Below the pieces are notes generated by a model that saw only the letters and a list, made by a program, of their open reading frames with translations, ran no database searches and was not told the origin of the DNA. From Selaginella moellendorffii (taxonomy: Eukaryota > Plantae > Lycopodiophyta): 64,000 bases of DNA. This document shows, piece after piece, positions 43,388-51,805 of this stretch (the stretch's first letter is position 1; each line of letters opens with the position of its first letter). The position numbers and the translations under genes were made by a program. The stretch spans positions 602,693 to 666,692 of the forward strand of contig NW_003314284.1 of the NCBI RefSeq assembly GCF_000143415.4, in the 5' to 3' direction.

Positions 43388-45055
43388 ATGGTTGGGACGA
43401 TCAAACACCTCTACAACAGTCAATGGATGGTTGCATTGGCAAGTTTCTTCCTCATGATCTCCACGGGAGGAGCACTCAACAATTTCAGCCTCTTCTCGCA
43501 GCATCTCAAGCTGTCCCTCGACTACAACCAAAAAAATATCAACACCATAAGCTTATTTAAGGACGTTGGCACCAGCGTCGGGATTCTCTCCGGCCTCGTC
43601 TATGATCTCACCGGGCCCTGGGTCGTGCTCCTCCTTGGATTTGCGCTAAACTTTGCTGGATACTTCACGATATGGCTGGCTACAACGCAGAGAATCGCAC
43701 ACCCCCATGTCTGGGAACTGTGCTTCTATCTCTTTATGATCGGCGCATCGGCAGCCTTCACCACCACCGCTGTTCTTGTGGCCTGTGCCAAGAATTTCCC
43801 CAAGAACCAGGGCATGGTTCTTAGTCTTCTCGACAGTACGCAGGGATTGAGCGTTGCGATATTCACGCTGCTTTACCAGGCCTTCTTCTCTCACAGTGAC
43901 GATTCATTCGTTCTCTTGCTGGCCTGGTTTCCATCGCTCTTGTGCCTTCTCTTCGCGTTTTTCATTCGATCCGTCCCACTCGACGGCCGCTACAATGACT
44001 CGAGAACGCTCTTCGTCTTCGTGTCAGTAACTTTGATCCTGGCTGGATATCTCATGGCTATTATCATCCTCCAGCACTTCGTGCGCCTAGAATCTCGGAT
44101 CATCAAGGCCTTCTTTTCCATTATGCTGATCATTCTCTCCATCCCAGTTCTTGTGGTTCTGAGACAGGAATCCAAAACCCTCCGGCATCGCCATCGCGAA
44201 GAAGTTGATGTTGATCTAGTGGAGAACGCAGCGATAGAAACTCCTCAAACAGATTATCAAGACGTAGATCCTCCGGATCATGGGGCAGACGCCGCTGCTC
44301 CAGCTATCGCCTCGCACATTTCGATCTTCTTCTTTAAAGGATCGCCCGTCAAGCGAGGAGACGATTTCACAATCTTCCAGGCGCTCTGTAGCATCGACAT
44401 GTTTCTCATCTTCGTGGCTTCAACCTGTGGCATTGGCGCTGTGCTAACAGTGACCAACAATTTCGGCCAGATTGGAACGTCCCTTGGCTACTCCCAGGCC
44501 GGAACAAACACTTTCATCGCCCTCCTTAGCATCTGGGACTTCATCGGTGGCGTTGGCGTTGGCTTCATCTCGGATATATGCCTCGCCAGCTATGGCGTCG
44601 CAAGGCCCTTCTTCCTGTGCCTGGTTCTCTTGCTTCTGTCGCTTGGGAGCTTGATAATCGCTCTTGGGCTTCCCGGAGCGCTCTTCTACGGCTCGGTTTT
44701 GATTGGGTTGTCAATCGGTGGCCAGTGGTCGGTTCTTTACACCATGATAGCGGAGATCTTCGGGCTCAGGTTCTATGGGACGCTCCAAAATGTAACTTAC
44801 GTCGCTAAGGCGCTGGGAACTTATGTTTTGTCCGTCCGGGTGGCAGGAGTTTTATACGACCGCGAGAGTAAGCTTGGACCGAGCAATGGAAGTCTGGATG
44901 GTGATGAGCTCCTTTGCCATGGACCACATTGCTACAGAACAACCTTCTTTGTCATGGCTGGAGTGTGCTTGTTTGCATCCATTGTGAGCTTGATCTTGTC
45001 CATTAGAACAACAAAGTTTTATAGTGTCACTCTTCGAAAGAGATTAACTGGTTAA
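43388..45055 (+). CDS. Nodulin-like MFS transporter, copy 2
   Basis: 555-aa near-identical paralog of 11240-12910. Confidence 0.93.
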   Translation: MVGTIKHLYNSQWMVALASFFLMISTGGALNNFSLFSQHLKLSLDYNQKNINTISLFKDVGTSVGILSGLVYDLTGPWVVLLLGFALNFAGYFTIWLATTQRIAHPHVWELCFYLFMIGASAAFTTTAVLVACAKNFPKNQGMVLSLLDSTQGLSVAIFTLLYQAFFSHSDDSFVLLLAWFPSLLCLLFAFFIRSVPLDGRYNDSRTLFVFVSVTLILAGYLMAIIILQHFVRLESRIIKAFFSIMLIILSIPVLVVLRQESKTLRHRHREEVDVDLVENAAIETPQTDYQDVDPPDHGADAAAPAIASHISIFFFKGSPVKRGDDFTIFQALCSIDMFLIFVASTCGIGAVLTVTNNFGQIGTSLGYSQAGTNTFIALLSIWDFIGGVGVGFISDICLASYGVARPFFLCLVLLLLSLGSLIIALGLPGALFYGSVLIGLSIGGQWSVLYTMIAEIFGLRFYGTLQNVTYVAKALGTYVLSVRVAGVLYDRESKLGPSNGSLDGDELLCHGPHCYRTTFFVMAGVCLFASIVSLILSIRTTKFYSVTLRKRLTG

Positions 45056-45925: not shown

Positions 45926-46594
45926 TCATTGAAATTTCTGTTTGTAATCGCTCCACAACTGATCCACACTCTTTCCAGTCAGATCCTGGAAGTAGTTTTC
46001 ACTCCACCCGTCATAGAGCTTCTTGTTAAGCTCTGCCACAAAGCTCGGATGGAGATCGTTGACATAGTTTAGAAACAGTGCAGTCACGGTATACCCCTCG
46101 TCCCAGTGGCTCCCCGACCCCACAAACCCATTGGTCGACACACCTAGCTTAGCCTTGAGCCTCATAAAGTCGGCAATCCCCTCGATCAGTCCCTGCGGCG
46201 CCCGGCTCCCGTCCTTGCCGAACCACTGCCAAATGTGAGTCATCTCGTGGTACAAGACGCCTCGGAGCTCAAAAACCAAGTCTCCAGTGAAAGTAGCAAC
46301 AAACTGTGCGCTGAGATGGATCTCCACACCAATGGCGTAGGCCACCCCAGCCATGTCGTCCACTGTGAAGTGGATGGTGTCAATCTCCTTCTTAGGTGTG
46401 TCGGGGCTCCTATACTCGAAGCCAAGCTGGACGAAGGCCATGGCGTCGGCGAGGATGGAGAGGGCTCCATCTACTCCCATGACAGAGTTGAAGCGCTGGC
46501 CTCCTGGGGATTCTGGGGTTGTGTTGGCGCCTGTGATGGAGGTGCCTTGAGTTACCTGGAATGTTGCTAGGATAATGAGGAGAAAAATTGCCAT
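45926..46594 (-). CDS. PR-17 / basic secretory protein (BSP) family, zincin-like
   Basis: Signal peptide; GVAYA; GVLYHEMTHIWQW (HExxH); GLIEGIADFMRL; WDEGY..TA.FL.Y; LTGKSVDQLWSDYK. Confidence 0.93.
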   Translation of the reverse strand: MAIFLLIILATFQVTQGTSITGANTTPESPGGQRFNSVMGVDGALSILADAMAFVQLGFEYRSPDTPKKEIDTIHFTVDDMAGVAYAIGVEIHLSAQFVATFTGDLVFELRGVLYHEMTHIWQWFGKDGSRAPQGLIEGIADFMRLKAKLGVSTNGFVGSGSHWDEGYTVTALFLNYVNDLHPSFVAELNKKLYDGWSENYFQDLTGKSVDQLWSDYKQKFQ

Positions 46595-46959: not shown

Positions 46960-48930
46960 CTTTGTTTTCGTATGCCCTTAATCTTTGCCAGATCGCCTGG
47001 AGCCGGAAGAGCTCATCCATCTCCTCCTCACCTGCACATCCCTGCGATTGGTCGATGGTGGTAGGAAGCTCCACGCCCATATCTCCCGTCTGGGCCGCCT
47101 TGAAAGGGATGGGCGTCTCGCGAGTCACCTCATCGACATGTATGGCAAGTGCGGGCATTTGGACGATGCCAAGGCTGTGTTCTAAAGCCTTGACGCGAGT
47201 AAGGGGAGCTCTCTCTCGTGGAGCGCGCTCATCACGGCTTACGGCTCATGTGGATCGATCGGAGGGGCTGTTGGCCTGCTGGACGAGATGGAGGAGCAGG
47301 GAATTCTCCCGGATCAAACCGCCCTCTTGACAGCGCTCAATCTTTGCTCCACACACGGCGCTCTCGCGGGGGCATTGTGGTACACAAAATAATAGCGGAT
47401 CGTGGGCTGGAGAAGAATGTGATCATCTCAAATGCGATTATCAACATGTATGGAAAATGCGGCCAAATCGACCAAGCCAGAGCTTTCTTAGATAGAATGT
47501 ATTTCCGAGACACAGTGTCTTGGAACGCCATTGTTTCTGCATATGCCCAAAATGGGCATCAGTCGGATGCAGTGAAAATGCTCTTTGTCATGCAGCTCGA
47601 GGGTGTCAAGATTGGAAAAATCGGATTCGTTACACTCCTCAAGACTTGCTGCGACCCAATGTTCCTGCAGACCGGCAGACTCATTCACTCTTGTCTTGCG
47701 GAGGATGGTCTCCATGAGACGGACGTCACCACCGGAACGAGCCTCGTTCATATGTATGCAAAGTGTGGCAGAAGCGCGAGAGATTTTTTAGCGGATGAGC
47801 TGCAAGAACAAGTTTGCATGGTCTGCCTCCCCATTTGTAGGAAACACGCTGATAACCATGTATGGGAGGTGTGGCAGCGCAGATGAATCGAGGAGAGTTT
47901 TCCAGAGCATGGATTGTCCAGACGCAGTCGCCTGGTCGTCGATCATTGCAGTTCTCGCGGAGCAAGGCAATGGAAAAGGACTGGAGGCGATGGTGTTTCT
48001 TTGGCGCATGCAGCTAGAGAGCGTGAGGCCGAACAACGTAACTCTCGTGGCGGCGCTCAATGCGTGCCCGTCCCCGGCGTTTCTGCGCGGGGGGCGGGGG
48101 GGGGGGGGGGGGGGACAGATTCACCGTGGAGTCCGGCTATGACTCCTCTGACAAGATCGTGGGGAACGCGCTCGTCAACATGTTTGCAAAGTGTGGGAGC
48201 TTGCTTGATGCACTTCGCCAAGATCTCTCACAAGGATGCGACGTCGTGGAAAGCCTTGATCACGATCTACGCACAGAACCAGCATGGAAAAATCGCACTC
48301 GATTCGCTAAAACACATGCAGCTAGAAGGATTCCGGATGAACAAGCACACTTCCGTAAACGCTATCATTGCCTGCACGGAGATCTACTCCTTGAACGATG
48401 GCAAGCGAGTCCACGGCTGGATTCGCGAGAGGGGAAGGGAGCTGGACGTTCTACTCGGCAACGCAGTGGTCAATCTCTACAGCAAATGCGGGAGCCTGGA
48501 CGCTGCGTACGCGATGTTCTTCCAGCTGCGAAGAGAAGACGTGATAACCTGGAGTGCAATGGTGGGAGCCTACGCTCGCCACGGCCACGCGGTGTGAGCT
48601 CTCACGCTCTTCGGAGTGATGCAAATGGGATCCGGCACCATGCCAAACTCCATCAACTTCGTCAGCGTCCTCTCGGCGTGTAGCCACGCCGGGCTCTAGG
48701 ACGCTCACTGCAGCTTTGTGTCGATGAGGAGCGACTATGGGATCCCCCCCGCTGCGAAGTACTACGTGTGCATGGCCGATCTTCTCGGGCGATCGAGGAG
48801 ATGGTACGTTTCGTGGTATGCTCTCCAGTGGAGGGCGATGCCGTGGTGTGGAGGGCCGTGCTGGCGGCTTGCAGAAGCCTCGGCAAAGTTGAGATTGGGA
48901 ACCGAGCTGTTAAGCGGACTCGTGATTTAG
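46960..48930 (+). pseudogene. PLS-class PPR pseudogene
   Basis: Repeated N.LI.MYGKCG....A / VSWNA...AYAQNGH units spread over several frames, with stops and a poly-G run at ~48091-48114. Confidence 0.85.
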
Positions 48931-50109
48931 AAAACAAGCGGAAAAGAGAAGATAAGCGAAGCAATCCTGACATACCCGGTATGAGAACGTCTGAGTTCCA
49001 ACGTACGTAGAAGAGTTCCACTTCTTCTTTTGCACGAGCATCCAGCTCTCTCTGAATTTAGTGCTATCGGGCCGTAAGTTTGGATCTGAAAACAGCGTCA
49101 AGTCAGCGTGCTCTTTCAACACAGTGCAACAAGACGAAACAAGTCATATCGTCTTCTATTTCAATACCAGGATGTTCGTTTGTATTTGAGATCATCCTTG
49201 AGACTTGTCAGTTGACTGATCGCTGGGTCCGCTCCTTCTGCATCCATGCTGGACGCTCTTTTAAGAAGAACAAAGGAAGCAAGCTGGAAGCATTCACCAG
49301 AATTGCTCCAGCTTCTCTTTTTGTTGCTTGATGGTCACCCATAGTTGCACCAGCACAGCAAGCTCCATGAGCAGCAAAGATCCTACAATCAGACGAATCC
49401 TGAGGAGCTTTACACTCAAGTCCATGTCTGCGGATGAGAAATGCAGATAATTGAAGCACATACCAGTAGAGTGAGCTCGTGGGAGATTATTTTGTTGCCC
49501 GCATGAAGCGCAGATCTTGAAACGGTGACCCTTTGGGCAGGACACGAAGGCACCCAGCATTGGACACAGCACAGCCGCTTCCAGCAGCACGAAGCCAAAT
49601 GCAGCTACCTGGATCCGCCATATTCGAGATTTACAAGTCTGCTCGTTAAGCCCTAGGGATGGCAGGCTTCTCATTCTCATTCGGATATTCGTTGGGGCGG
49701 GCGGAGCAATAGCTTGAAGCCGGAGAGCCGGCTGCTGGTCTGGGCCTTGCCAGAACTAAAAGAGATACAGTTTATTTGAAAAGCCGAATGCAGCAGCGTC
49801 TGGGCTGAGGTTCGATTTCATCCAATTGTTTGCATATGTTTGTAACTTGACTTTCGATTTTCTTCAGGATCAAGACGCCTGAGAGTCGCTTGGCATCTCT
49901 ATATTCGCAGCAATTTCGAACCGGTTCGTGAGGCAAAGGCCAAGACTTGTTATTTAAGGCGTTCTCGAGCCAGCCGGATCCACAGAGCTGTGACAGCTAG
50001 CATCTGGTGCATTGTCAATCCATACTGAAGAATCTCAATTGAGGCTATGGTGTTCCAGCTCCCCATTTAACCATGTACATACCCTATAAAATCTCTCTCC
50101 TGATCTTGT

Positions 50110-50265: not shown

Positions 50266-51115
50266 AAATGCACTGAGACAGATATTACAGCAGCAGCAGT
50301 GAGCACATTTGGCTTCTGCTTCTCGAGCATCACGTACATATTAGTGCTGGGCCAGCATGTTTGTACAGGAGGCGGGTAGGGTCTCCCAGGCATAGATATC
50401 CTTTGGGAACAAACAGAAGTCGTGTTGTACCGAACAGATCGACCATGCAGAACCAATTCGGTTGAATGTGGATGTCGGCTGTCATACTTTGGAAGGTTTC
50501 TCAGGCGGCTGCAACAGGCGCACAAAGACCATAGCATCCCTTCCCTTGGAAGATTAATATAGCCTTCTGCTTATGCCCAGCCAGGGCATAGCATGAGAAT
50601 GGTCTAGGAAGAGGTTACGAGCCCAGCATGGTTCGGTTGGCTTCAGCCATATGTATGCTGCCAGCATTGCATTTGCAGTCTACATTTTCCGTAACTTGCT
50701 TGCTCTGAGCGTAGCCACCTGACATGCTGCATTGTCGAATTCTCCGCAGCGATTCACATACAGAGTTTCCATTATTTTTATCTGCAACCAAATTTCCAGG
50801 TTCGTTTTGATGATTTGATTTTTTGGATAATCAAGGAAATTTATCTAGGACAGCTTATATACTTATTAATTTCACACGTTTCCTTATGGAATTAAGACCA
50901 CACCATATACGCAATTAGTGTTTTGGTTTTGGGCGCGGAGGTTCATCAGATCCATCGATTGCACATGGTGTAGCCTGGCTCATGCTGAGGTCGTGCCAAA
51001 CTTGGAGGTACGGGAATAGCCGGAGTACACGGGCACGCTCACTCTCCCTCAAAGCGCGAAACACAGACCTGTATAAACAAAAGCATATATAGAACGCTTA
51101 CAAACAGCGGGAGAT

Positions 51116-51805
51116 TCACCTGATAAACACCATCACGGGCATGGTGTTGATGGGAACACTTAAGCCAGCGATGCTGTCATGGTCCGTCACTATGGCTCCC
51201 AGACGTGGAGTCTCTCCGAAAGGTCCTCCACTGCTACTACTTGCACCTCCAGCTTTGAGACAGTTTACACATCGTTTGACGCACACGACATTAGATTCGC
51301 CTTTCTTCTTCTGGTGCTTCTGCACGGCGTAAGTTGTATCAGCCGACTCATTCACTCGTGCCAGCTTCTCGAACACAACATGCTCCGCACAGTTCTCGAA
51401 GTCGCGGCCCTTACTGGGCTTGGCCTCTTTATCCTCGTCGAGAAGTGCCAAGTGGAGCCTGGAATGGGTGTCATCATCAAAAGCTGAGACTTGAACTCCC
51501 AGCCTCTTCTCCACATCCTTGATGCTTACTGGATTTGGCCTACCGCCTGCCATGTCCATCCTCAAACGAACGTTAGCACCCACAACTCTCGTTCCTTGTT
51601 CCGTGATTCCACAGCACAACACATCGCTCACTTGCCCCTTCTTTGCATGCTCAATAGGAGCCTGGCGAACCAACATCCCCAAGTGCAAAATGCGCAGGAA
51701 ATGGATGAATGCGTCCCCATCGCCGAGACCTGGAATACCTTGCAATGCATTCCACAGCTTCTGAGCATCGGCAAGGTTCACCTGCTCAGAATCCTTTGAG
51801 GCCAT
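51116..51805 (-). CDS. Intronless orphan protein, putative zinc-dependent (cytidine-deaminase-fold) deaminase
   Basis: 229-aa ATG-initiated ORF; strand pair VLCCGITEQGTRVVGANV, then C139-A-E141, strand TTYAV and C179-x-x-C182. Confidence 0.6.
   Translation of the reverse strand: MASKDSEQVNLADAQKLWNALQGIPGLGDGDAFIHFLRILHLGMLVRQAPIEHAKKGQVSDVLCCGITEQGTRVVGANVRLRMDMAGGRPNPVSIKDVEKRLGVQVSAFDDDTHSRLHLALLDEDKEAKPSKGRDFENCAEHVVFEKLARVNESADTTYAVQKHQKKKGESNVVCVKRCVNCLKAGGASSSSGGPFGETPRLGAIVTDHDSIAGLSVPINTMPVMVFIR

Follow-up and report, generated by a model that had tools for sequence, protein, structure and literature searches.

What does a short open reading frame (ORF) encode when no sequence-profile library recognises it, although its Cys and Glu residues fall in the order of a zinc-dependent deaminase? 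This question is raised by a locus on the minus strand of a 64,000-nucleotide (nt) stretch of the spikemoss Selaginella moellendorffii (NCBI RefSeq assembly GCF_000143415.4, contig NW_003314284.1, positions 602,693 to 666,692 of the forward strand), referred to below in its entirety as the window. From the sequence alone, an original prediction had described there an orphan, intronless ORF of 229 residues with a toxin-like deaminase signature. The ORF was confirmed at 51116-51805, where it begins at the first ATG past an in-frame stop, and it proved to be most of the coding sequence of a longer, spliced gene. Taking the predicted structure, the conservation and the gene structure together, we consider it probable that this gene encodes a soluble protein of 279 residues that is an active zinc-dependent deaminase, belonging to a new family with the cytidine deaminase (CDA) fold.

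The gene product and its predicted fold

The ORF had been taken as intronless; instead, its TGA stop (51116-51118) overlaps the GT of a splice donor (..ATCAG|GTGAAT) and lies inside a 51-nt phase-2 intron with GT..AG ends (51069..51119, minus strand), which is followed by a second exon. Exon 1 (51120..51805, minus strand) codes from Met1 up to and including the second base of the Arg229 codon and holds the whole predicted deaminase core, and exon 2 (50915..51068, minus strand, 154 nt) codes for residues 229-279 and the TAA stop at 50915-50917. The joined translation is identical to the S. moellendorffii protein XP_024534727.1 (LOC9656643, member P0005 of the family described below). Transcript contigs of three runs from three studies (X1, X2 and X3) omit exactly the 51 intron nucleotides, with CT..AC ends on the plus strand, and since the contig totals of these runs (5-37 Mb) and the spliced form mark them as transcriptomes, the gene is expressed and spliced. 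The 3' untranslated region was placed at 50594..50914 (minus strand, about 320 nt, to the limit of the transcript contigs) by an X1 contig on 50594-51066 that crosses the splice junction. The protein starts with a conserved acidic helix and has no signal or transit peptide, which suggests a cytosolic or nuclear location, and the C-terminal segment encoded by exon 2 (..FPxLxVW..) is conserved in members P0003, P0009 and P0014.

An AlphaFold2 model was built from 12 sequences and reached a mean predicted local distance difference test score (pLDDT) of 76.3 and a predicted template modelling score (pTM) of 0.79. In this model, two N-terminal helices precede strands 59-68 and 73-77, a helical insert, a helix at 140-150 that starts with CAE, strands 155-167 and 170-175, a helix at 180-186 that starts with CxxC, a strand at 203-205 and C-terminal helices. 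The core order of the CDA superfamily (strand 1, strand 2, helix 2, strand 3, helix 3, strand 4) is thereby present, with moderate scores. The insert (residues 79-138; 51392..51571, minus strand) is poorly modelled, with low pLDDT over residues 87-133, and is variable in sequence except for the conserved A108, R116 and L117. In the CDD/CDA and BSD clade a Glu ends strand 5 (Table 1 of PMC3239186); V217 and P218, conserved in every member covering them, form a candidate strand-5 segment without a conserved Glu, strand 5 not being clearly assigned in the model.

The model was compared with known and predicted structures by three methods. Nearly all of the top 50 chains returned by Foldseek from the PDB were cytidine or blasticidin-S deaminases (E about 0.2-0.9, probability up to 0.84), and a shape search of the ESM Atlas gave cytidine-deaminase clusters with template modelling scores, by target, of 0.56-0.62; no significant match came from the viral models searched with Foldseek. 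Among 48,161 representative chains, VIA-align placed a blasticidin-S deaminase (BSD) first (Z 7.6, root-mean-square deviation 3.2 Å, 109 residues), followed by a Bacillus anthracis CDA (Z 6.4), the type VI secretion toxin deaminase SsdA (9c63; Z 5.5) and ADAT2/3 (Z 5.1). When VIA-align was applied to the list from Foldseek, 38 chains had Z of at least 5 and all of them were deaminases; the BSDs aligned at Z 7.4-7.7 and 3.0-3.2 Å over 108-109 of their approximately 125 residues (2-114) with 16-19% identity, and the tetrameric CDAs at Z 5-6.5. We give weight to the fold assignment because the methods agree, because the small deaminase domain is almost fully covered, and because each of the two motifs (CxE, a form of the superfamily's [H/C/D]xE, and CxxC) begins a predicted helix, with a spacing of about 40 residues that CDA and BSD also show. 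To this extent the predicted structure bears out the original prediction, namely that the protein is undescribed, has a CDA fold and retains its zinc-binding and catalytic signature.

The motif order that had been noted in the ORF was also found as described: a beta-hairpin (VLCCGITEQGTRVVG...), an insert of about 60 residues, NCAE, the strand TTYAV, a basic loop and KRCVNC. Approximately 30 positions are conserved in every member covering them, while identity between groups is only 25-44%. Among these are C139 and E141 (C139-A140-E141, codons at 51383..51391, minus strand) and R178, C179 and C182 (R178-C179-V-N-C182, codons at 51260..51274, minus strand), so that the conservation in homologues on which the prediction had been made to depend does hold. 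Conserved in the same way are E146, K147 and R150, which share a helix with CAE, and Y159, Q162, G203, V206, T207 and D208. The first motif reads CAE in 10 of the 11 members covering it and CSE in the remaining one, and the second is R-C-x-[NK]-C, in which a conserved Arg replaces the usual Pro and no conserved Arg follows the second Cys. One proposed hallmark, a hairpin ending in GxN, does not extend to the family: G76 is conserved, and N78 is Ser in most members.

Zinc binding and catalysis are deduced from this fold and this conservation. A single zinc ion would be held by Cys139, where helix 2 begins, together with the pair Cys179 and Cys182 at the head of helix 3, and Glu141 would shuttle protons from a zinc-bound water molecule, which would attack the amino-bearing carbon of the base. 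The hairpin before CxxC, the two N-terminal helices and the C-terminal helical extension are likely to shape the pocket.

Substrate and competing interpretations

Several results weigh against this assignment. Pfam, NCBIfam, PHROG and PADLOC gave no family match for the ORF or for nine members, in Pfam even at E up to 10, and neither the ORF nor the family profile drew more than chance matches from the PDB sequences. In the best local hhalign alignment of the family core with a TadA profile built from 80 enterobacterial loci, RCxNC fell on PCxxC and LGHVVT on strand 4, and CAE fell on HAE with a relaxed threshold; the score was matched by 9 of 200 column shuffles, which makes the alignment consistent with a relationship and not significant. 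The global mode of hhalign against the same profile was meaningless, and the family against the single Escherichia coli Cdd sequence gave nothing. The alignment behind the structural model holds only 12 sequences, the Foldseek support (E about 0.2) is weak, and a structural Z of 7.7 is "middling" by VIA-align's own caution. Finally, BSD and CDA, the closest structures, are enzymes of free nucleosides, a point in favour of a small-molecule substrate.

The alternative that survives best is accordingly a deaminase of small molecules (a free cytosine nucleoside, a nucleotide, or a nucleoside-like metabolite or antibiotic), that is, a divergent offshoot of the CDD/CDA-BSD group that would serve seed-free vascular plants in metabolism or detoxification. 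We regard it as a serious contender, if not a likely one. In addition to supplying the best structural matches in both the PDB and the ESM Atlas, CDD/CDA and BSD (3oj6, 2z3g, 3b8f), which align over 100-110 residues, share with the spikemoss protein three Cys ligands with the same spacing and a helix 2 that begins with CAE, and this combination is the CDD/CDA signature (Table 1 of PMC3239186). The three Cys ligands, which had been read as a sign of a toxin-type enzyme, are no evidence for one, being the hallmark of the tetrameric CDA/BSD clade. Set against this, the family has the conserved RCxNC in place of PCxxCR and lacks a conserved hairpin Asn after strand 2; the protein is twice the size of a CDA or BSD (279 residues, against approximately 130 in the compact homotetramers of that clade), carries the 60-residue insert and terminal extensions, and occurs only in lycophytes and ferns; PF00383 and PF08211 match no member (Pfam, E up to 10); and the language-model neighbours are toxin-type deaminases, not CDAs. 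An ordinary plant CDA is of the dimeric His-Cys-Cys type and has Pfam matches, and the spikemoss protein, with three Cys ligands and no such match, was rejected as one.

As to the substrate of the putative deaminase, we lean slightly toward cytosine in a polynucleotide (RNA or single-stranded DNA) over a free nucleoside, a tentative preference to which we give somewhat less than an even chance. It is based on the missing conservation of the CDA-like hairpin Asn, on inserts that sit at the pocket and are placed as in the YwqJ-group toxin deaminases (PMC3239186), on Arg or Lys conserved at seven positions in mildly basic proteins (isoelectric point 7.7-9.3 across the family), and on the lineage-specific duplication that has produced four loci and a paralogue in Selaginella. 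A more specific version, which is possible although doubtful, would have the protein deaminate cytosine in polynucleotides, in the nucleus or cytosol of seed-free vascular plants, as an APOBEC-like editor or mutator of RNA or of viral or transposon nucleic acids; such an enzyme would have arisen independently of DYW and AID/APOBEC, persisted in lycophytes and ferns for over 400 million years, and disappeared from seed plants. To our knowledge, land plants have no characterised free-standing nucleic-acid deaminase besides the organellar PPR-DYW editors and the housekeeping CDA, TadA and dCMP deaminases. If the APOBEC-like version is true, the family would offer a new compact deaminase scaffold, while an ordinary nucleoside as the substrate would make it a modest addition to the CDA superfamily; the role in defence or against transposons and the use in base editing that had been proposed are speculation. 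Being expressed and strongly conserved, with all catalytic residues kept, the protein is in any case a concrete and cheaply testable candidate for a new activity in editing, defence or nucleoside metabolism.

The comparison with other deaminase groups led to no closer placement. In a language-model search, the nearest named clusters carried YwqJ, MsddA-like, OTT_1508 or Toxin-deaminase domains (scores 0.75-0.88), with those of YwqJ (PF14431) nearest at 0.86-0.88. The YwqJ / BURPS668_1122 / SCP1.201 group has, like the spikemoss family, extra residues between strand 3 and CxxC, and its insert positions are matched by residues 79-138 and by the strand pair 155-167 / 170-175 before C179; a CxE variant also occurs in the YwqJ clade (PMC3239186). 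In contrast to that group, PF14431 gives no match, P0012 and P0016 are the sole members with the Gly of Gx[CH]xE, the His that the group conserves in its insert is not kept in the family, and the protein is a standalone plant protein from a gene with a spliceosomal intron and without secretion, repeat or immunity context. The OTT_1508-like deaminases (PF14441) share the CDA superfamily and a language-model cluster at 0.75-0.76; they differ in that PF14441 gives no match, that GxxK before CxxC appears only in one Selaginella allele (GESK, P0001), and that the strand-4 loop of the family is LxxLxVP, with no aromatic residue where axxP requires one. TadA and ADAT2 are represented by structural matches (Z 4.1-5.2) and by the in-register but marginal hhalign alignment described above, whereas the first ligand is Cys in the family and His in TadA, and the C-terminal half differs. 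The DYW domain of the plant PPR editors gave one structural match (9kfx, Z 4.5), and a DYW-type editor was rejected, as the protein has no HxE(K), PG box, CxDCH, DYW tail, PPR tract or organellar presequence and no PPR or DYW match in Pfam. We file the family as a new one inside the CDA superfamily, with no clade assigned.

It is improbable that a shallow alignment misled the modelling towards a CDA-like structure, with coincidental motifs on a protein of another fold and unrelated function. Such an artefact would fit the lack of a sequence-profile match and the poor model that was obtained from 3 sequences (pLDDT 48), and a Z below 8 may, according to VIA-align's note, reflect a common arrangement. 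On the other side stand the pTM reached with 12 sequences, the agreement on deaminases of three search methods and libraries, an alignment that spans nearly the whole BSD chain, two motifs that each begin a helix and are spaced as in a CDA, and the independent language-model search, which likewise indicates deaminases.

Quite unlikely, too, is a protein that binds zinc and is catalytically inactive, with a structural, regulatory or nucleic-acid-binding role like that of ADAT3/Tad3. Inactive deaminase domains usually lose the Glu or a ligand, whereas Glu141 and all three Cys are conserved in every covering member of both subfamilies of this family. In favour of inactivity, ADAT2/3 chains are among the structural matches, and inactive paralogues with the CDA fold are common (PMC3239186, Table 1).

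Family members and inheritance

The gene had been called an orphan; the same genome holds four near-identical loci (LOC9656643, LOC9662428, LOC112351202 and LOC112351222) and one paralogue that is 37% identical (SELMODRAFT_430527, P0009), and homologues are present in Lycopodiaceae and ferns. The window contains only one copy. A HMMER profile search of 1.84 billion representative proteins returned only nine proteins and no relative from seed plants, bryophytes, algae, fungi or bacteria, and the membership did not grow when the family profile and P0009 were used in word-index searches. In all, the family has about a dozen members: the Selaginella copies, the clubmoss Diphasiastrum complanatum, the ferns Adiantum capillus-veneris and A. 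nelumboides, and three sets of transcript contigs from Logan. It is unnamed and, as far as searched, confined to lycophytes and ferns.

All three genomic loci read, those of Selaginella, Diphasiastrum and Adiantum, share the position of this phase-2 intron: exon 1 stops within the same Arg codon, at ..AG|GT. A maximum-likelihood tree divides the family into two subfamilies (split support 100/99), each with at least one fern and one lycophyte member, and a Gly/Ser-rich loop after the CxxC helix separates the same two groups. Given the shared phase-2 intron and the two fern/lycophyte subfamilies, the family is older than the lycophyte-fern split and vertically inherited, and since it had divided before that divergence, the protein has been maintained under selection since before it took place. 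The family would be a case of a gene family that disappeared in the lineage leading to seed plants. A horizontal acquisition by Selaginella, as had been suggested, is contradicted by the intron and the subfamilies, which rule out a recent transfer; an ancient transfer into the vascular-plant ancestor is conceivable, though nothing supports it.

A recently acquired and domesticated bacterial polymorphic-toxin deaminase, serving in defence or against transposons as first proposed, is therefore very unlikely: the toxin-type domains of the nearest named language-model clusters, the structural match to SsdA and the report of a divergent OTT_1508-like deaminase in Selaginella (PMC3239186) are outweighed by the exclusion of a recent transfer, by the lack of a bacterial relative among the 1.84 billion representatives, by toxin-clade Pfam models (YwqJ, OTT_1508 and others) that match no member even at E up to 10, and by signature motifs of YwqJ (Gx[CH]xE) and OTT_1508 (GxxK) that are not conserved. 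No cluster of this family contains the reported "strongly divergent" OTT_1508-like protein, SELMODRAFT_427619 (Iyer et al. 2011, PMC3239186), which, judged by cluster membership, is probably the product of a different gene.

Some further observations concern individual members and neighbours. The best unfiltered language-model neighbours of P0001 were Ascomycota hypothetical-protein clusters (225-259 residues, score 0.91-0.92, 180-184 shared features), which the HMMER search did not match. The same 90% clusters contain older gene models that are far longer than 279 residues (P0004, SELMODRAFT_445532, 635 residues; P0006, 419; P0017 from A. nelumboides, 623) and are probably fusions with neighbours or tandem copies; LOC112351222 and LOC112351202 lie on one scaffold. 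Within the Selaginella-type subfamily, P0003 (L001) and P0009 start with MGSGxS, and the window copy starts with MASKDS, without that motif. MGSGxS fits the N-myristoylation consensus (Gly2, Ser6), a hint that some paralogues may associate with membranes.

Sequence variants and genomic neighbourhood

At 51286, the contigs of all four runs have T where the window has C on the plus strand, corresponding to G>A in the mRNA (GTG to ATG, V174M); residue 174 is Val in the annotated proteins of all four genomic loci. G-to-A "editing" at this site was considered and rejected, as a contig of run X7 that retains the intron has the same base, and the difference looks like an allele or reference difference. 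Besides retaining the 51-nt intron, this X7 contig (50932-51801) departs from the window sequence at 10 positions, with G28S and E198Q, both of which match the paralogous loci LOC9662428 and LOC112351202, among the differences; it represents either unspliced RNA or DNA of another copy.

The ORF had been described as lying among pseudogene debris. Upstream, at 47218-49010 (plus strand), PPR repeats are distributed across three reading frames or more (ORFs 47218-47886 and 47914-48597), and the translation at 48768-49010 may include an E-domain-like tail, in a segment with no Pfam match. This region is probably a frame-broken PPR pseudogene of the PLS type and the likely source of the description. 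The short ORFs flanking the deaminase-like gene have no family match. Ordinary plant genes that appear intact are, on the other hand, only a few kilobases away: also upstream are two single-ORF genes, a nodulin-like / MFS / NFD4_C transporter at 43388-45055 (plus strand) and a BSP "peptidase of plants and bacteria" at 45926-46594 (minus strand).

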